DNA from: Dimorphilus gyrociliatus
Taxonomy: Eukaryota; Animalia; Annelida
Assembly (NCBI GenBank): GCA_904063045.1
Contig: CAJFCJ010000012.1
Location: 186,001-250,000 of the forward strand
Length of the DNA: 64,000 bases
Reading direction: 5' to 3'
In this document: in pieces, positions 6,601 through 61,123 of the stretch
Layout: the number at the start of each line of letters is the position of its first letter
Numbering within the stretch: the first letter of the stretch is position 1
Notes under the pieces: model-generated
Seen by the model: only the letters and a program-made list of their open reading frames with translations
The model's database searches: none
Told to the model about the DNA's origin: nothing
Translations under genes and position numbers: made by a program

Positions 6601-7085
6601 TTTTTAGAGGACGCCCACGCCACCTCCGCCTTCGCCAAGATTAGATAAAGTGAACGAAAGTAATACAAGCTAATAAAATCATGTCTGTTAATAAATATTT
6701 AATGAATAATATTTGTAGAAAATCGCCTTCTAGCGGAACTTCAAAGAATTCGAGAAGAGAGGGAAGAGATTGAATTAAAACGAGAAGAATTAATGCGTAA
6801 ATGCAAGCTGCTGCATTCAAAGTTTACTAACAGGAGAGATCAGGCAAAAAATATTTGGAAACAAAAATACTATGAGCAAAAGAAGAAAACTCCACCAATT
6901 GAGGAGAAATGTGCAAAGTTAAAGCTGGAATTGGAATCTACACATAAAAGACTTATGATACAGATGGAAGGAAGGGAGAAGGATGGAAGAAAATTAAATC
7001 TGGACAAGCCGTCCGAACACGTAAGTAAAGAGATATTTCAATAAACATTATGTATATATATATATACTGTATAAATTTATATATA

Positions 7086-7121
<36 letters not shown>

Positions 7122-7959
7122 ATACTAAACTTTTTTCAAATAGTCCTTTTCTAGCATATTATTAACAATATTTTGATTATAAATTTATTAATGACTTATT
7201 AATATTTATATTAATAGTAATATTAATCTATTAAAAGGACAACTTTGAGCATTTTATAGAAAAAAGTTTGTTTATTCTTTAGTTTTGTTAAGTTCATTTT
7301 AATACAGAATCACCATTTTTTCCCGCACCTCGGTTCAGGTAGTTGTGTGTTTTTGCACATTTAACACAATAACAGAAAATTGTTTTTGTTTATAAATATT
7401 AACGAGCACTTTATAATTTGCAAAAATAAAAGTAAAAACTTTTCATTGTCTATTAATAAAATTAATGTTTTTATTTTATTATTGTTTATAATTAATAGAC
7501 TGTGAGAAATAGATAGACATGCTGTATATTTATATAAATTATATGTAAAGAAAGGATTTGTGTATATTTCTCACTCATTTCATTTTTTCAATCTTTTATA
7601 GATGAACTTGCGTTTGCAAGCAACGAGGACTCAGCACTTTATAGACGATTTACACAGAAAAATCGAAAATATTAAAATGAAGCTTACAGCAGAAATGAAA
7701 GTAATATGATAAACATTATTTTTGTATCCTCCTTCTTAGCTTTAGAAGACAAAAGAATAAGCTATGTAATATTGTTCTAAAATATTTAATTTGTATTTCT
7801 TAGCTTCGCCACCAAGCTGAAACTGAACAGAGAGCTTTAAGGGCTGAATTAACGCAGAAAAAAATTAACGTAACCCTATCGCGTAATCAACGACTAGAAC
7901 AACTGAAAACTCAGGATGCTCTTCCGTCTCATCGTTCGCCAATAACAACGTCTCGTTAG
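688..7959 (+). CDS. SPATA1: Spermatogenesis-associated protein 1 (SPATA1) homolog, 12 coding exons, about 676 aa
   Basis: Exons 688-747, 2034-2140, 2767-2887, 3515-3568, 3855-4020, 5046-5466, 5768-5867, 6027-6419, 6608-6659, 6719-7020, 7602-7700, 7804-7959. All are GT-AG and phase-compatible (2031 nt including stop). The N-terminus LADLHIYVVPVDLW...SAGYVRVHPDVSIYNLREEIEAQLG...KEFIFLKSVGRCLTKVK...HFLPPHAYLPEIFLL and the C-terminal coiled coil IWKQKYYEQKKKTPPIEE...HKRLMIQMEGRE...KMKLTAEMKLRHQAETEQRALRAELTQKK match the SPATA1 N- and C-terminal blocks as I recall them. Confidence 0.85.
7089..7116. repeat. (TA)n microsatellite in a SPATA1 intron
   Basis: About 14 TA units seen directly. Confidence 0.9.
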
Positions 7960-10003
7960 ACTACTTTGGTGCTGTTCTGATTAAAAGAAAATATTTTATG
8001 AAAAAAATTCATTTCTTTTCTTGATTGTCATACTGCAGTAGAAAAAAGTATTAACCTTATAATTACATAGATATTTCAGTTCAACAACGTCAACTTTATA
8101 GCTTCTATTCATTCATATCCATACTATTCTAGTAATAGTAATGAACTTATAATTGATTGTCTATAAGTTCTGTTGATTATATATGCGTTGCGGTTCTGAA
8201 ATATTTACTTATTTACGTGTAAATGATTAATTCATTAAAAAAAATAATTCTATCAAACAAGATGTTTTGTTTGATTGTTTATTTTCTTTTTATTTTCATT
8301 GAAGATGTTTTCTCCGAGTTAAAATTGAAAATAATAGAAATAGACTTTTCAATAAACAAACCATGCTATCTCAATAAATTAATAAAGAAAGCTACATGTG
8401 AACATTTTATATCTCTTGTTACATATTGTGAATATAAATAGAAGCAAATGTATACATGAATATCTACAGCAAAGGGAATAGAATGTCCAATTCAAACAAA
8501 CATCTAATTAAACAACATATTATCCTTCTGTGGTCCCGTAATCTAATATAGCGCTTTTGTGTTCTTTTGCGTTAAGCTATTGACAGAAGAGATTTAGCCA
8601 TCACAAGTTTGATTCAATAGGTTTCTTTTATTTTCATTGTACAAGTTTTCATATGCACTGACAAGAAGAATTTGATATTAATTACAAACGCTTTAAGCAT
8701 GTTAGCAGTCTGCAACAGATTGTATCCTGAGTATCCATATTTCACTTTTATTTATGGTAATATTCCTAATTGTTTCTGCCTTCCTTTCGTAGCTTTATTT
8801 CATTGTTTAGAATCTTGTTTTCTTCTACCAATTCTGTCCATTTGCCATTAAATTATCGTTGCAAATCCATTATGTTGAAAATCAATACCTGGAAATTAGC
8901 CACCAGTTTTTGGCTAAAGAACACATACAACATGGACTAAACTAGACCAATGATATTTCATATGAAACAGTGACCGAAGGATGGTGATATGGTTGTTTAT
9001 TTAAACAGACCTGCTTGAATTTTAATGTCCAAGCGGTTATACGTTTCGCATCAGACGTTTTCCTTTGTTACCTCAAATACACATGTATTATAAATATAAT
9101 ATAGGAAAATGTTCTTTAATATATATATATATAACTTTATATACCGTATATATTATATATTTTATTACTTCAATGGCCAAAGTTCAATACAGAGTATAGA
9201 AGATATTTTAATAACTTTATTATAAGCTAGCTTTGTATATGTTCGAAGATAGTACTGTCTTTTTATATTTATAATATATTTTGTTGGTAGAACTCATTGA
9301 ATGTAAAACAAGAATATTTTTTAAACAAGATAATCTAGATAAGGGATGGTTAAAAGTAGGATTACATCAATCTATCGAACTTTTTTCGTACTTTAATTAC
9401 CTGTTGAGAAGTGGTCACGCATTCTCCTCAACTATTATAGTTATATAGATTTTAGAATATAGCAATTATCTTACAAATGTTGTCATTTCTTGAAAAGATT
9501 TCCACACATGACTGTTAATAGAATTTAAAAGTTATTTTTAAATATTAATGAGAACGTTGTGATTCTTTAAAGACTCAAAGTATTCATTAACTATCAAGGT
9601 ATCCCTTCGTCTTTCTTTTTAGAATAGAGAGATACCAATTGAGTAGTTTCTACCTTGAAGTTAAAGCACAAATATTATTTCAGAGTACAATATTTTACTG
9701 TACCTTGCATTTTGAGACAACTTTTAATTGTATATTTCTATTATAAAACGTACAAATTATTTGTTTTCAATAGTGCTATTATGTAAAAAGTTTTAATATA
9801 GTGCATTTATATTTATATGGTCAGTACTTACAAAAAAGCACTGTATACATTGAAACTCGAAATTAGGTAAAATAAAAATTATTCTATTTCTCAACAAGAC
9901 TACAAACTAGATATAGGCAGTATGACAACGTCCCATTAGTGAGGCCATCGTATTCTGTGGCGCTTCATTTCCACTTGAAGCGTCTAAGAAAAGAAGACAA
10001 ATA

Positions 10004-10406
10004 ATGAAGATTCTCAGCGCTTCTCTCCTTGTTTTCACGTTGGCTTTTACGATCAATATTATTGTTGGAAAAGTGCTTTCCACTGGTGAAATTGATGAAA
10101 ATGTTGGTCTTAATTATAACGATGAGTTCAAAATTCTGATTTTATGCTTAATTCGAGCTAAGGAATTGGTAAGTTATTTTTTTAAATAGAAATACCAAAT
10201 GAAATCAAAGTTGTCTTTAGGAGTCTCTTGGATACGTTAAAGAAGCGAAAATGATGGAAGGTAAGATTATTTAATAATAGTAAAAGAATATTTAGGTCTT
10301 ATTTTATAATAAAATAAATAGAATATTTATATTTTTCCCTTCAGATATTGATTTTTGTAAGGCTACTATGAAACAGAAAAGAGAAACCATACCCTTTTTT
10401 GGTTAA
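10004..10406 (+). CDS. Small secreted prepropeptide (88 aa), candidate amidated neuropeptide precursor (ETIPFF-amide)
   Basis: Exons 10004-10168 (gtaagt donor), 10221-10260 (gtaaga donor) and 10345-10406 are in frame. Product: MKILSASLLVFTLAFTINIIVGKVLSTGEIDENVGLNYNDEFKILILCLIRAKELESLGYVKEAKMMEDIDFCKATMKQKRETIPFFG*. It has a hydrophobic signal peptide, two Cys, a dibasic KR site and a terminal Gly before the stop. Confidence 0.75.
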
Positions 10407-11543
10407 ACTGTTAGCTGAGTAAAAGAGTCTGTAGTAGTTTAATGAGTGTTCTTGTCAATGAGTACGAATAACACAATCTGGTCATCCGTTCCTAAAAATA
10501 TAGATAAAGTTCCCCAGTCCCAGTGTCTAAATTTTAAGAATAAATAACAACAAACAACACAAATTAACCGAGAAGGATTTAAAAATTAGATTAAACTATT
10601 ACCTCGCGATTGTATTATTCTTTTTATTCTTCTTAATTTTATAGAAGAATTAAGCATGACTATTCCCTTTATTCTTCTTTTTTGAAATAAAAATAATAAC
10701 AATAGAATGAATATTTTTTAAATCATCTATCAATATAATTGTATTTTTCTTTTCTTGTCACATTAGTAAACTAAACTAGATTATCTCTCGGTCTTCACGG
10801 AGTCTATTTTCTACTTAAAAAAACGACTTAATCCCATTGTAGAAAGTCACGCAATAATTCTTAAAGAAGTATAAAAATTCATATAATATTAACCGAAATA
10901 CAGTATTATGACTATAAAATATAAACAATGCCATAAATGTTTTACTCTAGTTTAATCATCAGTTAAGTATAAAATCACTTAGTTACGTTTTAATATTATG
11001 CATATATTATGACAATGATCTTCATTTTTATTGTTATGTTAGTGATAGGAAACTATAATTTGCACATTTTTAATCAGTTTTATTTAAACGCATAAAATAT
11101 ATATGAAGAACTAGATCAAATTGTCAATGGACTATAAACTTCTTGATGCTTCTACTCTTAAGAATCATATTTCCTCCCTATTTTCTTGCCAATTCGGATC
11201 TTATATCCGGCTGAATAATTAAATAAAAAAATAATTAATCAACTATAAGGTGACAGAAAATCTAGGAGGTAACAGCTGAACCTTTTTCTGTTTTTGAGTT
11301 GACAAGGCAAACTAATGAAACAATTCTAGATTCTCTTAGGTATTTTGTTATTAAAATTTACTGCAACCATAATGTAGGCATGTCAGTGAGTTGTATTTAC
11401 GTGTTGAAAGATAACGCTTACTTGATTTTCAATATGAATACTGAATCATTTTATTTCTATAGTGATTCTTATCTAGAATGTTTAGTGCCTATATATGTAA
11501 AAACTTTTTATTATGAATATTTAGTATCACGGGATATTTCAAA

Positions 11544-11731
11544 ATGGTAGTAATAAGAAGATTCTTCTGGACCAAACCACGTATGTCTTACAATTGAAAT
11601 TTTAGACTTTCACATAGTAAATTATCAATTACATTTTATTTAATATGTTCGATATCTTTGTGATATGTTATACACTAATTTACCTATAAACTGTATAAAA
11701 TATACTATAAAATTAAAACTTTCTATATATA

Positions 11732-11771
<40 letters not shown>

Positions 11772-12482
11772 ATGTGTGTATGTGTATATATATGTTAAGA
11801 ACGGGTGAAAACTATTCATTTATTTTTTAATTTATATTCATCTTTTTTTCAATATTTAGCTAGCTTTTTCCCAACCTTTTTCTCAATACACTGGCCTAAT
11901 CATACATCTCCAATTTCATCTCCTTATACTTTAAAATTATCCACGCATTCAAAATTCAAATCAACAACATCATCTCCTAATTTTATAAAAACTTCTACTC
12001 AAGTAATTTCTTCTTCAACATTTGGAACTATAGAGAACTTAGAAGCTAAAGACACCAAGACTATGGTTATCTCATTTTCTATACTTGCCCTTGTTTTAAT
12101 TGCCTTATTTATATTGAGTATAACTCTAATAGTGAAAAGAAGAGGCGAAATTCGTAAGCTTAAACTGAGATCTATCACTAGAAGAAGAAATGTTTATGAA
12201 GATATTCAAGACAACTCAAGTAAAAATTGTTCTAGTACCGATGTTGGCAATGTCACAGAAAATTCTTATGAAAATGTTTGCAATGTTATGAGGAGGGCTA
12301 ATGAAAACAGTTGCAGCAGAGAGAGAGCAGAAGTGGCCAGCTACTTGAGCATTAGAACCGAATACGACGACAAAAATCGTAACTCAACTTATTATTTAAC
12401 AATAAGAAGCGATAGCTATACTGATACCGAGGGGAAAAGAGACTGTGTTAGCAAGCATGATTATTTAGATATTAAACCTTGA
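11544..12482 (+). CDS. Single-pass membrane protein with Ser/Thr-rich ectodomain and multi-tyrosine cytoplasmic tail (5' end uncertain)
   Basis: Large terminal exon about 11860/11864-12482 encodes an S/T-rich stalk, TM segment MVISFSILALVLIALFILSITLIV, a KRR stop-transfer signal, and a tail with YEDI, YENV, YLSI, YYLTI and YLDI. An upstream exon ending at 11580 (gtatgt donor) joins in either of two frames: ATG 11544 to the 11860 acceptor, or ATG 11380 plus exon 11525-11580 to the 11864 acceptor. Confidence 0.6.
11735..11794. repeat. Compound (TA)n(TG)n microsatellite
   Basis: Seen directly. Confidence 0.9.
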
Positions 12483-17001: not shown

Positions 17002-17817
17002 ACATTGAAAAAAATATGCTTAAAAACCTTTAAAATATTTATGAAATATTTAAACCATCTTATTCAAATAGTCTCTTCCTTTTTTCTCTATGCATATTTA
17101 TTAAGTAAGAAATGTTGTAAAAAAAACAAAAGATCATCCAATTGATAAATTTAATTACGGTTGTAATTTGTTCGTGGAAAAAAAAGAGAATTGATTTATT
17201 GATAATTACTGAACAGATGTATTCTTATAATTCAATGTAAATACAATAATCATTATATGTTACAAGTATTAGTTAATTTATGAAAAGGGACTTTTCCATT
17301 TATACCATTAATATATTAATATTTAAATACGAATGTTTCTTAGGAATTGCTAAGTTTCTTCAATCTCTTACTCTTAGGGTTATAAAGGAAGGAATAAATT
17401 AAAAAATAAAAGAGCTCCTTGAACGGTATATTTGCTAGAAATCGATCGATCATGTTCAAGGAAAAGAAAGTAACCTTGGGTAAGAAAATGTATCGTTTAT
17501 AACAAACGATATTTAAAAGGTACACAGAGGCTTTATTTCGTAAATACATTTAAAAAATCACTTGGGACGAATAAAAAATAACTGTAGATGGTAAAAAAAG
17601 AAGGCGTAAAATTTTCATTTATTTATTTCATTACTTTCTTTATATTTATATACCAAAAGAGAATATTTTTAAAAGCTTTAAGACATTTACAATATAATAC
17701 ATAGTCCATTAAAAGTTAAATGAACATTTGGCTAGTGTTAGACAGTCTGTAAAAGGCTTACATCAGCGCCATCTAACAGTTCCACAAAGTGATATACATG
17801 GCTTAGTATACTTCGGG

Positions 17818-20800
17818 ATGTCGTCTTTACAACACAATTCAACTGAGAATATATCAAATCAACTTACTGCTGTTACAATAACATTGCTGACTTTGCAGAT
17901 TATCGTGTTTATAGTTGGTATTATAGGAAATTCGTTAGTAATTTTTGCTATAACATTTTACAAAGGAGTTCGACGTAAAAGCGTTGCAAACTATTATATT
18001 TGGAATCTGGCACTAAGCGATGAACTTTTTGTTTTAACTCTTCCATCAGAGATTTACGCAAGTTTAAGTTATGATTACATATTGGGTAATTTTTTATGTC
18101 AATTGTTCAATGTATTCAAGGAAACGAACCGTATTTGTTCTGTTTGGAATTTGGTCGCATTAAGTGTTGACCGTTACTTAGCAACTTTTCAAAATCGTTC
18201 TCACCTAAGGACAATTAATCGAGGAAAAGCGGTATGTTTATGTATATGGATAGGTTCTATGCTTGTGTCAACACCCTATTGGTTATACGCCGGTACAATA
18301 TACTATAAAGAGGATAACAGGCAGGATCAGTCTACCAGCTTATAAAATTAATTACTATTAACTAATATTACACCGATATATTTAATTATTTGCAATATCT
18401 CTCGAAACTTTTAAAACAAACACAGGCCTTTAAAATAAGGATAAACTAATTAATACTACTATTCTACTTGTAGGAATATGTTAATATTTTCGTATTTTAG
18501 AACTAAAATTAGCTACAGAATTAATAATTAAATTCATCTTAGAATTCTTTTTGATTTTATAGGATTTACTGCTCGCCGTCATAAAATTTCTAGCAGAAAG
18601 TGAAACTATACGTAGACATTATAATATATAATTATTTAGTTTTTATGGATCGCATCCAGGGATCAACATTATAAAATATACTTATCTTTGCAAAAAGAAA
18701 GTAAAAGGTAGGACAATATTAACACAATAATGATAAAGTCTCTTTAGCGCGTATAAGTTTCCAATTTAGTTTAATTGTTATTGTATTTCATCGTACAAAT
18801 TCCTGGAAAATATCATTCGTTTAAGAACAAGTAGATTATTTTAACGGCAAACGTCAGCATTTTTATCATTATGAGCAACAGCAATCAATATTGTCTAGCT
18901 ACTGGTTCAATCTACTAATTACCTCTCACATGTCTCTATATTGGAACAAAAAATTGTAATAGTATTTTCTCAGACCATTGTAGGTAATGATAATTATTTT
19001 CTGATAAGACTCTGTTCCTTCTATTGTGATTTATTATTATTATTATTATTATTATTCTGCCGGAAATTTCCATTCAATTTAAAGGATAATAGAGAAAGAG
19101 ATCGTTATTTTTAATACCTATGTAGATGCATCGATAAAAATTCCAAGTATTTTTCACGAAAAAGATGCACTCTCTCCTCTCTCACCTTTCTGTGTTCCAT
19201 CTTTTCTTTCAAACATTCTCTCAGGCAAAGAAAGTAGAACTTTATGCATGAAATCTAAATTTAACAATAGGCGCACACCCTTTTCCTTTTATATTTTCAA
19301 AAAAAAGTAGATCAACTGTTAACCTAATTAAATTTATTTACCAGAATCTAAACATTCTTCATATTGTCATCCTTCATTTTTTTAACGTCACCAATAAAGC
19401 CATTTTCGTCTAAATTTATTTACAGAGAGACTACAAGTTATATAACCTAAAATATTCACTTAGAACATCTAATATCTATATATTTGTCATTGTCCCTAGA
19501 ATACTATTAAATTAAACTTTAACCTCCAACATTTACAAATTAAATAAACTAATTAAGATTGTTTTTATGCAATTTTATATTAGTTTGCACCAAAAAAAAG
19601 ATAGAAACAGTCAAAGAGAACGCTAATGTATCATTTTTCTATTATTTAAATATTAGCTAGTGATAAAATATTACCTTGAAATGAATTATCTTATTAGTAA
19701 TGTATCAATTAATATGAATATATTGTATTGTACAATGTTTAAAGATTCAAAATGATCTATTTTACTAATATACCTAACGTTAATTGCATAGACTAGGCTT
19801 AGTCTCACAAGTGTATATGTATATACTTTTATATACATAAATTCAAGCTATTGACTGATCCTACCTATAGAACTTCATGCCAATTTAATATTTACAATGT
19901 TACTATCAATGGTGTTAATTTTGGATATTTTTGGCCAAATTTCCAATTTGCAATGGGAGCAGTTTTACCATTTTGTATAATATTAGTTAGTTATGTTCTA
20001 CTTTTAAATCGAATGAAGATAATACTCAAAGCGAGAACCTCGAAAAAGAAAGGGCCTTCTAAACGAATGACAAGAACCGTAATTGTGGTTGTTCTTCTTT
20101 TCGCTATCCTTCAAGCTCCTTATTACGCTTTTGAAGTGGTGAATAGTGTCATCATTGAAAAGCAAATGTTTACCAATGATATAATACTTTTGACTATTTT
20201 AACCAAGTTAGGTTATCTTTTTGGTGGTCTTGCCTCTCTGACATCTTGCATTAACCCAATTATTTATGGTCTTATGAATGAAAACTACAGTGAGTATATA
20301 CTATATATATAAATTTATTGTGTAGGTAATAGGTAAAAGATATTTTGACATCAATAGAGAAAAAAATGCACAAACAGTCAATTAATAATTCTAATAGGCT
20401 AATTTTAAACTTCTTTTTACTCAGTGTAAAAGTTAGGTGTGGCTTTCTTTGTATTATGGTGTAGCTTTTTAAGAGGAAATAGAAGAATTTACCAACAAAT
20501 TGTCATAAACACTCTGGTGATACTAAATAATATACTGTGCATATACAGTATAATATTTATACAAAACAGCTAAATAGTCAAAAGAAGCTGTGGTGAAAGC
20601 AAGATAAGTTCAAATGATATTACGTAATAACTCAATTATTAAGGCAATGGCCGGAATAGGAATGTTATAAATGCAGCTAAAAATAGTATGTTTTTATTTA
20701 AGTGTAATTCTCTGAAAGAAAAGTCAATAGTAGTTATTCTAATATAGTAAAAAAAACTGACCTAACTCTTTCCAAGTTGATGGTTAAATTACCCTCAAAT

Positions 20801-44696: not shown

Positions 44697-45065
44697 TCAT
44701 TCTTCAAGCCCAGTTTCGAAAAGTGCAGGATCCCACAGATCGTATAGATCTTCTTCTTGGTTTTCCTCTTTGTCTTCTGAGTGTTCGTCTTGAGATTTTG
44801 CATAACTTTCGCTGTGTGACCCAAAATCATTTCCTTGTCTTCTTGGTGTACCACAATTAAATACTCCACATCCACCTATTATCATATTGAGAAACCTTTT
44901 TTCGAAATTTCTACAGAAATTATCAATCGAACAAATACATTCGTTCTTTCTAATGCAACAGTTTTCTCCAGTTTTTTCTCCCTTAGTTTGTATACATTGA
45001 AGTTTTTTAGGTAATGCTGATACTGCTACCAGGTATAAAGATAGAATTAAGAGTATACTTGACAT
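44697..45065 (-). CDS. Intronless secreted cysteine-rich peptide precursor (122 aa) with acidic C-terminal tail
   Basis: Signal peptide MSSILLILSLYLVAVSA, then 8 Cys spaced C-x11-CC-x5-C-x-C-x5-C-x14-C-x4-C, dibasic KR and RR sites, and a D/E-rich tail. The ordered architecture argues against a chance ORF. Confidence 0.7.
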   Translation of the reverse strand: MSSILLILSLYLVAVSALPKKLQCIQTKGEKTGENCCIRKNECICSIDNFCRNFEKRFLNMIIGGCGVFNCGTPRRQGNDFGSHSESYAKSQDEHSEDKEENQEEDLYDLWDPALFETGLEE

Positions 45066-50279: not shown

Positions 50280-53200
50280 ATGCAACCTGCTGATACAGTA
50301 CCAAATTCTAATTGGCCTAATTCGTTCGAACAAGAAGGTCAAAATCATATTTGGCCTAATATGCAGTGGCAGCAAGATGACGCGCAACAGCAACAGGGCG
50401 CTGCGTACATTCCGCCGAATCTTTCTATGCAGCAACCCTTATTTTATCCCAATCTGGTATGTTATCTATTCAAAGACAGCCAAGTCTTATCAACTAGATC
50501 AATTCTAGCAGTATTGAAATTTCATTCTCATTGTTAGAAGTATTACTAAAACCTATGCTAGAGACACACAAGCCAAAATATTTGGCAGTTTGAACGAATT
50601 GTTATATAAATACTCAAAAGATACCCTCCATTTCGAGCTAATATGTCTTACAAGTATTTACTTGTTAGAAATAATCAGTTTTAAAAAAGCTAGATTTTAT
50701 TGGTATGATTTATATTAAATGAGTTTATACAGATGTTTTTACACTTCCGCGTCTCATATTAGAGCTCAAATTTTTTTAATTTAAACGTGTTTATACACCT
50801 ATACTTTTACACCTGTTCCTGTAATATACAGGCCTAGGCAGTTATCCAGGCTATGAACATGAGATATTATTCATATTTTTTTTATAAAGATAGCGATACA
50901 TGAATAGAATCCCTGTTTTATTGCATTGGTCAATATTGAAAGCCCTTTTTTATTTAATATTTTTATATTAATACAGCAGTGTCAGATGTATCTTCGATCG
51001 ATTCAAGCCCAGCAGCAACAGCAAGCAGAAAGTCGGTCTTCAGCTAATGTCGCAAATTCCCAACCTTTTTTGCCCCATTCGGATCATCAGGTAAGCTATT
51101 TATAACTTTTTATGTAAGGTAGGAGGCAAGTTACAAGTTTATTGTGCGAAAGCCTTGTTTAAAAAATGATATTTTCTTTCCCTAATTGCTAAACGTAGTC
51201 TTATTTTCTATTGTTTTTCATAATTAAATCCTTTTCATCATATTTTCTAAGGTCGATTACTTTAAAATCATTTCAAAAAACTGTGTATGTTCAGTTCTTT
51301 GGAACTAGAAACAAGAGGTTGGAGGGTTTTGAACTCACAAACATAGTTAAATGAAAATTGGTGACACTTGTTTACAATATGATTAAATGTATTCGATGAA
51401 TCAAATTTCGTGCATTAGTGGTTGAATTAGCTAAATCTCATTATTTTTTATCAATTAGTGAACAAAATTTTCATAAAATATCCCGTAAACTTATATGCAC
51501 CCACCGCTTTTACTTTGATTGTATCGATCGCGACATAACTTACTGCGCCACCTGGTGAAAATTGTGCTGTTAGAAAAGAGACGTTCGATGCAATGTTTAC
51601 AGCTGGTCACAGATGTACGATTTGTGCACGTTCAACACCGGTTTCCATTCAAGATGATACAGCCGTAACGTCCTTTCTCTCGCCAGGAGATATTTTCTTT
51701 TTTTCGCATAATTCATACGTAGTGTGTGTCAAGAGGTCGTCGACACCATCTATTTTGCCAAAACGTGGAGATGGCTGGAAAAATAAACATTTTACTAAGA
51801 AAAAGAGGACGGATTCTACTGGGGTAGGCTATTCGATCAGTTTTGAAATTGAAATAATGCGTATTTTACGAGAAAACATATAAAATATGTTGCGTAATTA
51901 TTGATCCTCATAGGCGATGCCGGTAGAAGCTGGTTTCGTGGGCGTGAGACTTGTGTGCAATTTTTTTTTGTTTTACAAATTTCGGGCGTATTTTAATTTT
52001 TCTGACAATAACTGTTGTAAATTTTACTAAAAGGCCTATTTTCGGAAGACTCCAATAAATGGCCTATTCAATAGAGTACACCCATGATGTCATCTTGGAA
52101 ACTGGTATCTAACGAAAATATATCAGTGCTACTATATTATATATAGGTCTATTCTAATAATCATTCTGTAACTGTTAACAGAGAATTTTTATAGAGAATA
52201 TAATATTTTTATAGTTAGTCCTGCATTCTTCAAATTCTTTATATATTGTTTCACTGATTTGTCCACTGAGTAATATAATTGCTTCTACCAACTGATGATC
52301 AAATAAGTAACCTGAACATAAACTAAACCTAGGTTCTAAAGAGAGGCAATTTAGTAATATCTTAATAAAAGCTGCAACTCTATAAAGGAACTGAGTTGCT
52401 GAAAACGATCCTAATCTTTAAGTAACTTTACAAATAGAGCTTCAATTCATTATATAGTCATTTTGCCAAATGTCACTTCACTGTGACCTGCTGACAAGCC
52501 TGTTTTTCAACAAGTTATACATGTTTATAGAAAATTGGTAACACCAAAGCCCAATTAAACAATTCTTCAGTTCTACTCTAGAATCTTGATTATATATACA
52601 ATTGTCTTTCTTTATAACATCGAGTTTTATTTGAAAATATTTTTGAACAAGAGTTGTATGCTTGTCATATGATGCAGCTGTTAAAATGAAATTAACAATT
52701 GATTTAGTTAGTGAAACGAAAAAATCTTTTTTTTCTTACAACACTTGAGCTATTCTGTAACTTTTCACTCTTGAATATATGAAATATGTTGTCTAAAATC
52801 AGGGTATCATATTGTTTTTTTTCTCAAACAGCTAAATAAACTGAATCCAAATGCTAGCACTTTTCATGCGAAAAATGCTCCTGAAACACAACAACAGGCA
52901 AATGGGGCCAATGAATGGCAAGATGCTGAAAGCGAAGCATCTAATCAGTCTGGTAAGCTTTAAATATTTCCACCAAAATATATTCTAATTTCAATGTGAT
53001 TGAGAAAGATGTCATTAAAGAGAGACATACCAATAATCAAAATATGAACATCTTTCAATCATTGCCAATTCTATTAAATAAAAATTAAATTTTTCTCATG
53101 ATTAACAACTACGTACATATTCTAAAATTTTCTTCAACAGCAAATCAGTCAGAAGTCCTGCATCAACCTAATGGCGATATGACCCCAGTGGACGCTCCGA

Positions 53201-54091
53201 CATCAGCAATTCATGCACCAGGAGTTTATCTACCTGACGATCAAACCTTAGACAAAGTTCTTAATAAAGACGAATTGTTAAATCGACTTCGTTCGCAGCT
53301 GGAATATTATTTTCGCCGGGAAAATCTTTCAACTGACGCCTATTTACTGTCACAAATGGACTCTGACACGTACGTGCCAATTGTGACAATAGCAAAATTT
53401 AACCAGGTAACTGTCATGATACCCGTGATTGTACATGTAAGGAATTAAAATTGTTTACCATAGGTGCGTAAGCTAACGCAGGATATTAGTTTGGTCGTCG
53501 AAGCACTGAAAACGTCATCAGAGCTGCAGCTGGATGATAAATTCGAGAGGGTGAGGGCTGCTCAGAAGCGCTGTGTCGTAATTCTGAGAGAAATTCCTCA
53601 GTCAACACCTGTTGATGAGGTAAATATTGTTAAATTTAAAAAGTTTCAATTTTTGTACACTTGTTTGTTAATTCCAGGTAAAAGGCCTCTTTAACTCTCC
53701 GGAATGTCCAAAATTTGTTAGTTGTGTGCATGAGCATAATGATGCATGGTATGTCAATTTTGAAACAGAAGAAAAAGCTCAGACTGCCTATCAATATCTG
53801 CGGGAAAATGTTCAGACTTTCTTGGGAAAGCCTTTGATGGCAAGGATCAAGGCAAAACCGGCCGTAACACCAAGGTCCTTTTATCCGTCTTCAAAAGCGA
53901 ATTCCCAAATTTCCCGATCAGTAAATTTAACGAGACAGCAATCTTCTGCTACTCCCATTTCTGTATCGGGATCCGTAGCTTCTACTGCTTCAGTCACCCA
54001 GCAACCACCAACGCCTTCTGAAACACCAACTTCGCAGTCTCAACCTCAGCAACAACAACAGCAGCCACAGCAGCAACAACAACAGCAACAA

Positions 54092-54123
<32 letters not shown>

Positions 54124-55939
54124 ACAGAATCAATTATTACAGCATCCTTTAACAATGATACCTCCACTTTACCCAAGTGCTAATGCAATCCCGCAATTAA
54201 TGGCGCTTAGTCAGCAGCAGCAGCAGCAACAAGTCGCTACATCTTCATATAATCAAACTCAACAAACAGCTGCTCAGCAGCAGTTGTCTATGTTTCCTAC
54301 TCAGAATTTCTTTCCTATCTTCCAGTATCAACCAACTACGGACCCGAGTACAGCATTTATGGCTCGAGGATACACAGTTGGTAGTCAGATAAGTGGAGGA
54401 GGTTCTGGATCTAATAGTGGAGGGAATGGCCAACAAGCTGGACAGAAAAACTATCAGGGAAGAAATAGTATAGGTTCAAATGGAGGACGAGGTTCAAATA
54501 GCGCAAATGGGACCAGAAGCAGCCCTAGAGCACAAAGTGGCGTTATGAATGGTGAGTGAAGAACTTAAGTTATTCTAAATGTAGGCATTCTAAATTGTTT
54601 GCACCAGTACTAATTGGTCGTGATACTAAAACATAAGCTATATTTTCACTGGTCACCAAGTCGTACTATTTAGATTTTACATGTTGATATATTTATATAT
54701 AATGCATAGTTGATTGACAAGAGTTATTGAGATGATTTTTTGTTATTAGCGAGATCAGAATATCCGGCACGCCAGCAACGCAACGAAATAGCGCAAACTC
54801 ATTCAATGCAACCGCATCCTGTGCATGGAGTTGTCCACCAGAAAAACGTCGATGTGATGCAAGCAATGCAACAAGTACTAGGCCATCAAATACATCCGAA
54901 TACTCAGATGCCACCTCGTTATTCGTATGTATAATTTCGAAATATCTAAGTTCAATTTTAACTCAATTTCCCTTACAGTCGACAGACAAATCAACAGTTT
55001 TCTCGAAATCGAGGTCGCCGAAGAGATGAAGATGAAATTAAACAACCCAGAAGAATGGATGGCGGTTCCATTATAAAAAACTCCAGGGATTCCAATTTTC
55101 AATTGGAGTCAAACTCTTTTCCGCCTTTACCCGGTGCTAATGTGAGAATTTTTTAGGGTAAAATTTGGCTCTTTCTTCATTGTGACTTTTCATTTCAGAG
55201 TAAATCGAACGAAAACGTTCAATCGAATGCCTCATCAGAGCGAATGAGCGATGTCGTGAAGGGTACGACTAAAACACCAACCCCTCGTGAGACAACGCCT
55301 GCATCCGTCAGCAGTGTAGAGCATAAGACTCCTCCTAAGCAACAACCGACAGCAAATGTAACCGAAACGACTGTCGCTGATGTGGAAGCGATAACAAATG
55401 GCCTTAACTCCGTACAAGTAAAAAAAGAAACAACCTCTAAAAATTCAAGCGCGAGATCGTCTTTATCACCTCAGTAAGTGATTTTATCTTTGTTAGGTAT
55501 GCAGGAAACAAGAAAGCAAATACTTCAATTGAGAACTTTTAAGGGGATATTGCAATCCACTCTTCTTGAAGTACATGAGTTAATTAATAAGGCAATTTTG
55601 TAAATGATGACAAACTCGCTCTTGACAAATGTGAGAGTTATGTGTGATTTAATGAGTCTGATAAATTTATAAAGCTATTTCCAAGTCATCGAAAGTTAAT
55701 CTTTGAACTCTTTTAGATATATATTTCTTATTAACAGGGCTTCAGCCGCTTCGGAAAACAACAACAAGCCTTCTCAACAAAGTTCCAGTCCTGCTACTTC
55801 TTTAGCGTCAGTTGTTGCTGGGAAAATATGGAAAACTCCAGCAAACAATATGAGCTATGCGCAAAAGGTAGCTCAGGCTTCGCAGCGTGATGGTGTTGTC
55901 ACTTCTCCTGAACCAGAATCGATACCGCCTGCAAACGGC

Positions 55940-55973
<34 letters not shown>

Positions 55974-56173
55974 GTAACAGTAGTAGCAATACCCAAGCTG
56001 CCACTGAAGCCACGCCTCAATCTCCAAGTCGAGCTCCAAGCGATAGTAACACTCAGCAAAGTAACTCGTATAGAGGAGGATTTAGGCAACGTGGTTCTAG
56101 ACCTGGATTCAGGCCTAGAAATGAAAGAAGAGCACACTATCGACCCGTTAACACAAACGGAGCGTCAAAATAG
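50280..56173 (+). CDS. LARP4: La-related protein 4/4B (LARP4 family), long isoform about 918 aa
   Basis: Exons 50280-50456, 50977-51090, 52832-52952, 53141-53406, 53464-53619, 53678-54551, 54750-54924, 54979-55141, 55199-55473, 55738-56173 (2757 nt, in frame). Motifs: PAM2 LNPNASTF, La motif ([24 protein letters not shown]), RRM ([10 protein letters not shown]...HNDAWYVNF...ARIKAK), and LARP4-type C-terminal [13 protein letters not shown] and RMSDVVKG. Confidence 0.92.
51917..51943 (+). CDS. LARP4: Candidate alternative first coding exon of LARP4 (MPVEAGFVG)
   Basis: ATG...GGC|gtgaga is a phase-0 donor that joins in frame to the PAM2 exon at 52832. It lies at the end of a CpG-enriched, promoter-like stretch (about 51500-51950). 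Confidence 0.5.
54047..54127 (+). repeat. Coding CAG/CAA repeat (Q6-P-Q20) in LARP4
   Basis: 20 consecutive mixed CAG/CAA codons at 54068-54127. Confidence 0.95.
55940..55972 (+). repeat. Coding (AAT)10-AAC repeat (poly-Asn, N11) in LARP4
   Basis: Seen directly in the terminal exon. Confidence 0.95.
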
Positions 56174-58782: not shown

Positions 58783-61123
58783 ATGGCTGCCTTAAAGTAT
58801 TTGAAAGGTTTTGGCAAAAATTTTATTAGCATACAACGTTCTGCTACGAATTTAAAAAGAAATGTGGCTTCGCTAAATACAGTACAACTAAGGTACTTAT
58901 ATTTTGTGGTTTAAAGTTTAATTTACCTGTAAATTTGGGGAGAAAGTAGTTCTTTCAATACAATCGGTAAAATAATTTTTTAGCAGACGAAAAACCTAGA
59001 TTTTGCTCCCAGACTAATACCAGTTAGTTGTGTAATAATATGATTATGTAACATATACAGTATATATATATATACAGTAAATAAAATTGTATTGTCTGTC
59101 TAGACTAAACCAATACGTAACGAACGATATTCTACAGAATTGCTTTTTTTTATTGTTATTTATTAAATTAAAACAGGTTCAACTCATCAGCTAGCGAAGA
59201 AACTCGACCAGAGCCATGCCAATCCGATTCTATGCTTGATATAGGAACGAGAAGAATTTTTTCTGAAGAACATGACATGTTCCGTAGATCAGTTCGGAAA
59301 TTCTTTCAAGAACGAGTAGTACCATTTCATACTCAGTTCGTTTTTCTTTTATATTCTTACAACCACACCTATATTAAGGACAACTGTCCTTTAAACACCT
59401 TAAGTTTTAAATATTTCACCTTTTAATTAAAAAGGGTATAGTTCAATTTAAGAAGGCGTTAAAACTATAAATTCTTATTTTTAAGTAATAAAAAATATAA
59501 TCTTAATATCAATAGACAGACTGTTTCCTTTACAAGGGTCAATGTACAATTGAATAGTTCAAAGTGCAAATACTTTTACGTGACTTTGTGCCATTCTTTA
59601 AGGAGAAATTTGTACTTTGAACAACTTTTGTTCCATTTTATAAGCCAAATATAAAATTGTCTAAGTGACAGCAATCATTTCATATCTTAAACAAAATATT
59701 CTATATTTTAAGATGGGAAAAGGATGGCCAAGTTAGTAGAGAAGTATGGCAACAAGCCGGCGAACAAGGTAATTTGTATTAAACATTGACTTGTTTAGTT
59801 TATATCAAATAGAATAAATATTACATACAATCTATTTTTTATTAGGTTTATTAGGTATATCAACTCCTACTGAGTTTGGTGGCTTGGGAGGCGATTTCTT
59901 GTCATCAGCAATTGCTTTAGAAGAACAGTAAGTAATTTTAAATTACTTTATCATTGCAATCAACTTTTAGTTGACATTTCTCTTTTCCTAGGGGATACGC
60001 AAATGCAAGTGGACTTGGCTTCTCCTTGCATAGTGATATCGTAATGCCATATTTGTGGCGATATGGATCAAAAGAACAAATTGAAAAATATATGCCCATC
60101 ATGATGAACGGTACATGCATTACGGCAATTGCAATGACGGAACCATCAGCTGGCAGTGATCTTCAGGGAATTAAAACAAAAGCAGTTAAAGATGGAGATG
60201 ATTGGATCCTAAATGGATCTAAAGTTTTTATTACAAATGGTTACATGTGTGATATGTGCGTCGTCGTTGCTATTACCGATGGAACAGTTAGTGAAGTTTT
60301 TGAAATCCTTCAATATTTTATTAAAATTTAAATAATTAACATGTACCCGTTTTTATTTCAGGCGAAATCTACATCTCATGGAATAAGTCTGTTTTTGGTT
60401 GATGCAGATAAGCCTGGTTTTAAGAAAGGAAAAAAGTTGAATAAAATAGGAGCCAAAGCTCAAGATACGGCTGAACTTTTCTTCGAGGATGTTCGCCTTC
60501 CCTCCTCCGCTTTACTCGGTAAAGAAAATCATGGATTCTATTATCTTATGCAGGTATAAAATATTTTTGATGGGCTTTTTAAGTACATAATTATTAATTA
60601 TATATTATACTACTAGGAGCTACCAAGAGAACGTTTACTGATTATTATCTATGCACAAGCCCAAGCTGAATTTATGTTTGAGGAGACGAGAAAATACGTT
60701 AAAGAAAGAAAAGCTTTCGGAAAAACTTTAAGCAACTTACAAACAATCCAACATAAACTTGCCGAAATGAAATCTGAAATTGCTGTTGGAAGAGCATTTA
60801 CAGACATGTGCCTCGATTTATACAATAAAGGAGAGTTAGATTCAAGTACTGCTTCAATTGGAAAATATTGGTAATTATTCAATAATGATTTCATAAGAGT
60901 GGGAGATACCAAATTAATGAAACTAACATTAAAATTTACTTGCAGGCTTAGCGAAATGCAAAACAGGATTGCAACCCAATGTTTGCAATTGCATGGCGGT
61001 TGGGGTTACATGATGGAATATCCAATCGCAAGAAGCTTTCTAGATGCCAGAGTTCAACCAATTTATGGAGGTGCTAACGAAATTATGAAAGAGTTGATAG
61101 CCAGACAGATAATTATGGATTAA
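58783..61123 (+). CDS. ACADL: Long-chain acyl-CoA dehydrogenase, mitochondrial (copy 1), 8 exons, 441 aa
   Basis: Exons 58783-58892, 59177-59335, 59713-59768, 59846-59927, 59992-60286, 60362-60553, 60617-60870, 60946-61123 (1326 nt). Motifs: DIGTRRIFSEEHDMFRRSVRKFFQE, AMTEPSAGSDLQG, AQDTAELFFEDVRLP, LPRERL (LCAD-type catalytic Glu), LHGGWGYM, QPIYGGANEIMKELIAR. Basic, acid-free presequence. Confidence 0.95.

Follow-up and report, generated by a model that had tools for sequence, protein, structure and literature searches.

Positions 10004 to 10406 of the window, that is, of the whole 64,000-nucleotide stretch of Dimorphilus gyrociliatus DNA analysed here, hold a real, single-copy, three-exon gene that is spliced and expressed. 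Its product is an 88-residue preproprotein apparently built like a small prohormone, which is plausibly classed as an orphan annelid proneuropeptide candidate. We see about an even chance that this protein is the precursor of a processed, amidated hexapeptide, ETIPFF-NH2, with a conserved propeptide as a possible co-product. An amidated neuropeptide had been proposed in the initial annotation of this DNA; the gene model and its splicing, the prohormone-like layout and the lone dibasic site ahead of a Gly speak for that proposal, while the peptide itself stays predicted.

Translation of the locus recovered every structural feature that had been claimed for it, namely a leader, two Cys residues, a KR-ETIPFF-G-stop end and two canonical short introns that keep the frame (Table 1). 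The ATG at 10004 lies in a good start context, with A at -3; reading upstream in frame, the closest stop is 27 codons away and no start codon intervenes. The splice sites of both introns are strong, and the reading frame is preserved across both. A search of protein databases with exon 1 returned a single record of 88 aa, 100% identical, DgyrCDS8638 (CAD5120056.1 / A0A7I8VWF9), which is deposited in NCBI/UniProt as an unnamed, hypothetical protein. All full-length analyses refer to this deposited record; exons 2 (13 aa) and 3 (19 aa) were covered as parts of it and not as single queries.

Table 1. Features of the candidate gene and its transcript, in window coordinates.
Feature	Position	Strand	Evidence or remark
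Upstream stretch, unspliced, in X2 contig	9300-10003	+	5' leader, or merged neighbouring / read-through transcript
Exon 1 (CDS), residues 1-55, 55 codons; leader MKILSASLLVFTLAFTINIIVG, then start of pro-region	10004-10168	+	Translation; X2 contig splice 10168/10221; 100% match to DgyrCDS8638
Predicted signal peptide, residues 1-22	10004-10069	+	Heuristic; likely cleavage G22|K23
Best-conserved block, residues 38-55, YNDEFKILILCLIRAKEL	10115-10168	+	16/18 identical to SRR31984834 ortholog
Cys48 codon	10145-10147	+	Inside block 38-55 (YNDEFKxLIxCLIRAKEL)
Intron 1, 52 nt, GTAAGT...TTTAG	10169-10220	+	Absent from X2 contig
Exon 2, 40 nt, residues 56-68 and first base of codon 69	10221-10260	+	Translation; X2 contig piece 10220-10258
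Intron 2, 84 nt, GTAAGA...TTCAG	10261-10344	+	Absent from X2 contig; X1 RNA contig begins at acceptor
Exon 3 (CDS end), residues 69-88 and stop TAA (10404-10406)	10345-10406	+	Translation; X1 and X2 contigs
Cys73 codon	10356-10358	+	Within exon 3
K78-Q79-K80-R81	10371-10382	+	Convertase-type motif, basic residue K78 at P4
ETIPFF and Gly88	10383-10403	+	Predicted product ETIPFF-NH2; processing inferred
Probable 3' UTR	10407-10606	+	AATAAA at 10539, ATTAAA at 10590; X1 contig ends at 10606

The window, positions 186001-250000 of contig 12, is AT-rich animal DNA with 23-40% G+C, and the local rise to 40% is due to a La-domain (LARP-type) gene at 53098-56173 (+) whose poly-Q and poly-N tracts are of great length. 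Downstream of the candidate, the next gene is a 225-aa ORF (11805-12482, +) with a hydrophobic segment in its middle and a weak match to TMEM51 (PF15345) that falls below the cut-off (E 1e-4, 22.5 vs 25.5 bits); a (TA)n / (TG)n microsatellite (11724-11787) lies between the two. Elsewhere in the window we noted a single-exon ORF of 122 aa (44697-45065, -) with a leader, about eight Cys residues, an acidic tail and no Pfam hit, as well as an acyl-CoA dehydrogenase exon (60026-60331, +; Acyl-CoA_dh_M, E 5e-16).

Two public runs, X1 and X2, have contigs on this stretch. Run X2 (2017) contributes one contig of 1734 nt that aligns to 9300-10167, 10220-10258 and 10343-11045, with both introns out at the predicted GT..AG sites and no alternative joint listed. 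The kind of this run is not recorded, and we mark it as RNA-derived because the joints of its contig lack the introns. Splicing that removes the KR...G-stop end had been named beforehand as an observation that would refute the proposal; the X2 contig is instead spliced as modelled. Run X1 (RNA, 2024, a separate study) contributes a 267-nt contig covering 10343-10606, which begins at the intron-2 acceptor with three extra letters that do not match the intron. This contig is consistent with the spliced form, and too short to serve as proof of it.

The ends of the transcript are less sharply drawn. The X1 contig stops about 10 nt past the ATTAAA at 10590, and the X2 contig continues to 11045, so that the latter exceeds the 267-nt CDS by at least 700 nt on the 5' side and 640 nt on the 3' side, all of it unspliced. 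No ORF longer than 55 aa was found in these flanks (9300-10003 and 10607-11045), and Rfam and tandem-repeat scans of 7000-12000 gave nothing accounting for the long contig. The flanks may be long UTRs, or they may stem from a merge with neighbouring or read-through transcripts in a compact genome. Within the upstream flank, G+C reaches 43% in 9900-9999, and eight ATGs occur in 9300-10003, only one of which (9922) is in the last 100 nt. A leader of at least 700 nt with eight ATGs, if it is a true leader, would hinder translation, and this counts against a peptide precursor.

The architecture of the protein is that expected of a small secreted precursor. Its leader consists of K2 followed by a 19-residue hydrophobic core (I3-V21) with small residues at -1 and -3, which on heuristic grounds makes a plausible cleaved signal peptide. 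The pro-region (residues 23-79) is acidic, with 11 D/E vs 8 K/R, and contains Cys48 and Cys73. K80-R81 is the sole dibasic site of the protein and is placed seven residues before its end; K-x-K-R is a pattern favoured by convertases. Gly88 directly precedes the TAA stop, in the position of an amide donor. The computed monoisotopic mass of ETIPFF-NH2 is 751.39 Da, and that of its pyroGlu form 733.38 Da. An AF2 model from a two-row alignment (pLDDT 49) has helices at residues 6-20, 40-57 and 63-81 and an unstructured tail (82-88). At low confidence, the second and third helices, joined by a short loop, would put Cys48 and Cys73 similarly far from the turn.

On this layout, the leader would bring the protein into the secretory pathway and then be removed, and a prohormone convertase would cut after K78-Q-K80-R81. 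Peptidylglycine alpha-amidating monooxygenase could then use Gly88 to yield ETIPFF-NH2, a hexapeptide that may begin with pyroGlu. The acidic propeptide of about 55 residues, with Cys48 and Cys73, would be co-released; since it includes the best-conserved block, it may itself be a product. We infer from the sequence that the protein is secreted, cleaved and amidated, expressed in neurons or endocrine cells and active in signalling.

To what extent the end motif is meaningful depends on how often it arises by chance. Among the 2682 open six-frame tails of the window, KR-x(2-11)-G-stop occurs in seven (0.26%) and any dibasic...G-stop in 14 (0.52%). Because of this chance frequency, the motif alone does not establish a neuropeptide. 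The annotation of D. gyrociliatus comprises, as we take it, about 14,000 genes, and genome-wide a few secreted proteins would be expected to carry the end motif by chance. Against pure coincidence speak the small size of the protein, a basic P4 at its lone dibasic site and the outcome of an ESM-Atlas comparison. In that comparison every one of the nearest feature clusters consisted of neuropeptide precursors, from families unrelated to one another (myosuppressin, 0.87; neuropeptide S, 0.86; PDH, 0.85; besides these DH31, gastrin/CCK, AKH, NPF, GnRH and FARP). The neighbours were still neuropeptide precursors when residues 1-79 were used, with the KR-ETIPFFG end removed. All scores were below 0.9, which rates the result as a lead only; as such it points to a resemblance to small prohormones, with no kinship to any one family.

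The machinery for such processing exists in the species, since PHM-type monooxygenase domains and at least eight convertase P-domains were found in its genome, and 7B2 together with dozens of amidated peptides has been published for it (PMC7854359). The criteria used for Platynereis proneuropeptides ask for a signal peptide, a basic site, an amidation Gly and precursor Cys residues, and for the absence of a Pfam domain (PMC3890597). DgyrCDS8638 agrees with these in its heuristically predicted leader, its dibasic site, its C-terminal Gly and the lack of any non-neuropeptide domain.

Relatives of the protein are few. No Pfam domain was detected in DgyrCDS8638, even at E <= 10, and no paralog was found in the 77.9-Mb assembly of its own genome. 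Word-index protein searches with exon 1, with DgyrCDS8638 and with the two-sequence alignment retrieved only the protein itself and an ortholog from run SRR31984834. When 1.84 billion representatives were searched exhaustively with HMMER (E <= 0.001), three proteins matched: the query itself, the same ortholog (E 1e-12) and a repeat protein that we rejected as spurious. The ortholog is a 65-aa ORF on a 1175-nt Logan contig and represents exon 1 running into the intron, with 66% identity over 56 residues. Its exon 1 stays in frame, retains the Cys and ends at the same boundary, and its changes are conservative. In both loci a Val (GTN) codon continues after ...AKEL, as would be expected of a conserved GT donor. 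No spliced ortholog was found in sequence collections. With one close ortholog as its sole detectable relative, the gene is lineage-restricted at the sequence level, and as far as sequence searches see, it appears confined to dinophilid annelids. A new or lineage-specific family had been suggested initially; the restriction to a lineage holds, whereas novelty to the databases does not, given the deposited DgyrCDS8638.

The comparison with the ortholog spans exon 1 only, and the KR...G-stop end, encoded by exon 3, lies outside it. Away from the best-conserved block, identity in exon 1 is 14/22 (~64%) in the leader and ~45% in residues 23-37, with G-K-V kept at the predicted leader cleavage. Conservation, as measured in exon 1, peaks in the Cys-bearing propeptide. 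The bioactive peptide is usually the best-conserved part of a precursor (PMC3890597), and the observed peak counts against an ETIPFF-NH2 precursor. By the same token, the earlier suggestion that the propeptide may be a second product gains weight from the peak at residues 38-55, with that product itself still a prediction.

Several other explanations of the locus were weighed against a processed ETIPFF-NH2 precursor. The most serious, which we consider a real possibility though a less probable one, would have the gene encode a small secreted protein whose activity resides in the intact chain or in its conserved, Cys-bearing helical pro-region, the KR-ETIPFFG end being incidental or only a trimming site. 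Gland, defence or reproductive secretory proteins would be examples, as would a disulfide-stapled hormone of about 55-65 residues. Such a protein would account for the conservation peak around Cys48, for the two helices and short loop of the low-confidence AF2 model, for an end motif that turns up by chance in 0.3-0.5% of open tails and for the omission of the protein from the published precursor list. Yet the lone dibasic site, with its basic P4 and its place right before a short Gly-ended tail, resembles a processing site, and the ESM-Atlas neighbours are prohormones, none of them gland or defence proteins. The helices are also weakly amphipathic (muH 0.21 for residues 40-57 and 0.07 for 63-81), and the model from which they come is poor.

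A membrane-anchored or ER-resident microprotein, in which an uncleaved signal anchor keeps the rest of the chain from ever entering regulated secretory granules, is unlikely. The hydrophobic core is long enough to raise the question, and the signal peptide was judged by heuristic. However, the n-region counts two residues only, the core is broken by polar residues (S5, S7, T12, T16 and N18, the last being E18 in the ortholog), and a conserved small residue, G22, stands at -1 and is followed by KV; a cleaved signal peptide would fit these features better than an anchor. The ORF might also be untranslated and have arisen by chance in a spliced non-coding RNA, in keeping with a CDS that takes up about 15% of the 1734-nt contig and, should the long leader be genuine, with as many as eight ATGs ahead of the start. 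We regard this as highly improbable, as the frame is kept over both introns, the CDS is the longest ORF of the transcript with a good start context, and exon 1 of the ortholog is open at the same boundary, with conservative changes at 66% identity.

The published neuropeptide candidates of D. gyrociliatus were found by BLAST together with a cleavage-pattern script (Martin-Duran et al. 2020, PMC7854359), and the supplement of that study lists families from 7B2 to WI, including the earlier set of Kerbl et al. 2017. DgyrCDS8638 and its peptide are absent from this precursor list, and the omission by such a screen counts against a neuropeptide precursor. In the full-text literature, ETIPFF, TIPFFG, IPFFamide and PFFamide led only to placozoan and endomorphin papers, and searches for peptidomic or cell-type evidence and for newer dinophilid or single-cell work gave nothing useful. 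As far as the searched literature shows, the protein carries an annotation but no name, and has apparently never been proposed as a neuropeptide.

Should the ETIPFF-NH2 precursor be genuine, it would enlarge the published D. gyrociliatus catalogue and supply a lineage-restricted orphan peptide for tests on orphan receptors. This species serves as a model of a miniature annelid that retains a "canonical" neuropeptide and GPCR complement (PMC7854359). The value of the addition would be incremental, clade- and species-specific annelid proneuropeptides being known already (PMC3890597), and the most useful pointer from the exon-1 comparison is that the conserved part is the propeptide.

A rhodopsin-type GPCR (7tm_1) is found 7.3 kb downstream on the same strand, in two ORFs at 17728-18345 and 19851-20312 (+; E 3e-28 and 2e-15). 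Among solved structures, the first ORF is most closely related to the angiotensin AT1, CXC chemokine, opioid and somatostatin receptors (E ~1e-22 to 1e-18). That this receptor gene lies near a PFF-amide candidate is probably due to chance. A bolder scenario has a young Dinophilidae neuropeptide converge on the (P)FF-amide end of SIFamide/FFamide and endomorphin-like peptides and signal via the FFamide receptor or the orphan opioid/somatostatin/angiotensin-group GPCR at 17728-20312, with the conserved Cys-stapled propeptide as a second hormone. We hold this to be very unlikely; if true, it would mean that an annelid nervous system which ranks among the smallest has a young ligand, perhaps paired with an adjacent receptor.

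Among known systems, the SIFamide/FFamide family resembles the candidate in its (P)FF-amide end, as seen in an oyster ...QLPFF-amide and in the ...GLFF-amide of a D. gyrociliatus precursor. In the precursors of this family the peptide comes right after the signal peptide; behind it lie another peptide, PNMNxLxF-amide, and a Cys pair at the C-terminus. ETIPFF is instead placed at the extreme C-terminus, the second peptide is absent and homology is undetectable, and the SIFamide/FFamide gene of D. gyrociliatus is located elsewhere in the genome. Membership was therefore rejected. By analogy of its FF-amide end, ETIPFF-NH2 could in principle address the SIFamide/FFamide receptor type.

A shared layout is seen in the precursors of myosuppressin, PDF/cerebrin and neuropeptide S: at some 80-100 aa, they combine a signal peptide with a helical acidic spacer and carry one peptide at the C-terminal end. 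The myosuppressin spacer carries two Cys residues, as does the pro-region described here, and myosuppressin itself is a C-terminal decapeptide of the ...HVFLRF-amide type. The ETIPFFG tail offers no RF-amide, and the Atlas score of 0.87, with 140/256 features, is below the level of a family member. DgyrCDS8638 does not match the Pigment_DH profile of PDF/cerebrin (PF06324), and the 17-18-residue NSxxLxxLxxxP peptide of that family is absent; a by-eye comparison with the two D. gyrociliatus PDF precursors left "IP.FF" as the only common part. Membership of the myosuppressin and PDF families was rejected. The NPS signature is absent as well.

An N-terminal Tyr is essential in opioid-type peptides. 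Endomorphin-2 (YPFF-NH2) and the placozoan endomorphin-like YPFF-amide (PMC5612019) have the three residues of a C-terminal PFF-amide in common with ETIPFF-NH2; unlike them, ETIPFF lacks the N-terminal Tyr, and precursor and lineage are unrelated, so that the likeness is at the level of a motif.

The nearest parallel is provided by the orphan precursors of Platynereis dumerilii, which has many annelid- or species-specific proneuropeptides, PCNamide, QRIamide, QDNamide and CCAamide among others (Conzelmann et al. 2013, PMC3890597). No look-alike of DgyrCDS8638 was found among the Platynereis precursor supplements, and it has no sequence similarity to any of these orphans; several Platynereis peptides are moreover supported by mass spectrometry, whereas ETIPFF-NH2 is predicted. 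The shared traits are those of design: a small precursor, free of Pfam domains, that has a signal peptide, Cys residues, one basic site and an amidation Gly, with relatives only among close kin. The single-copy peptide at the extreme C-terminus, which had first been taken as unusual, has a precedent in Platynereis PCNamide (PMC3890597), whose single peptide follows KKR at the extreme C-terminus in the same placement as ETIPFF.
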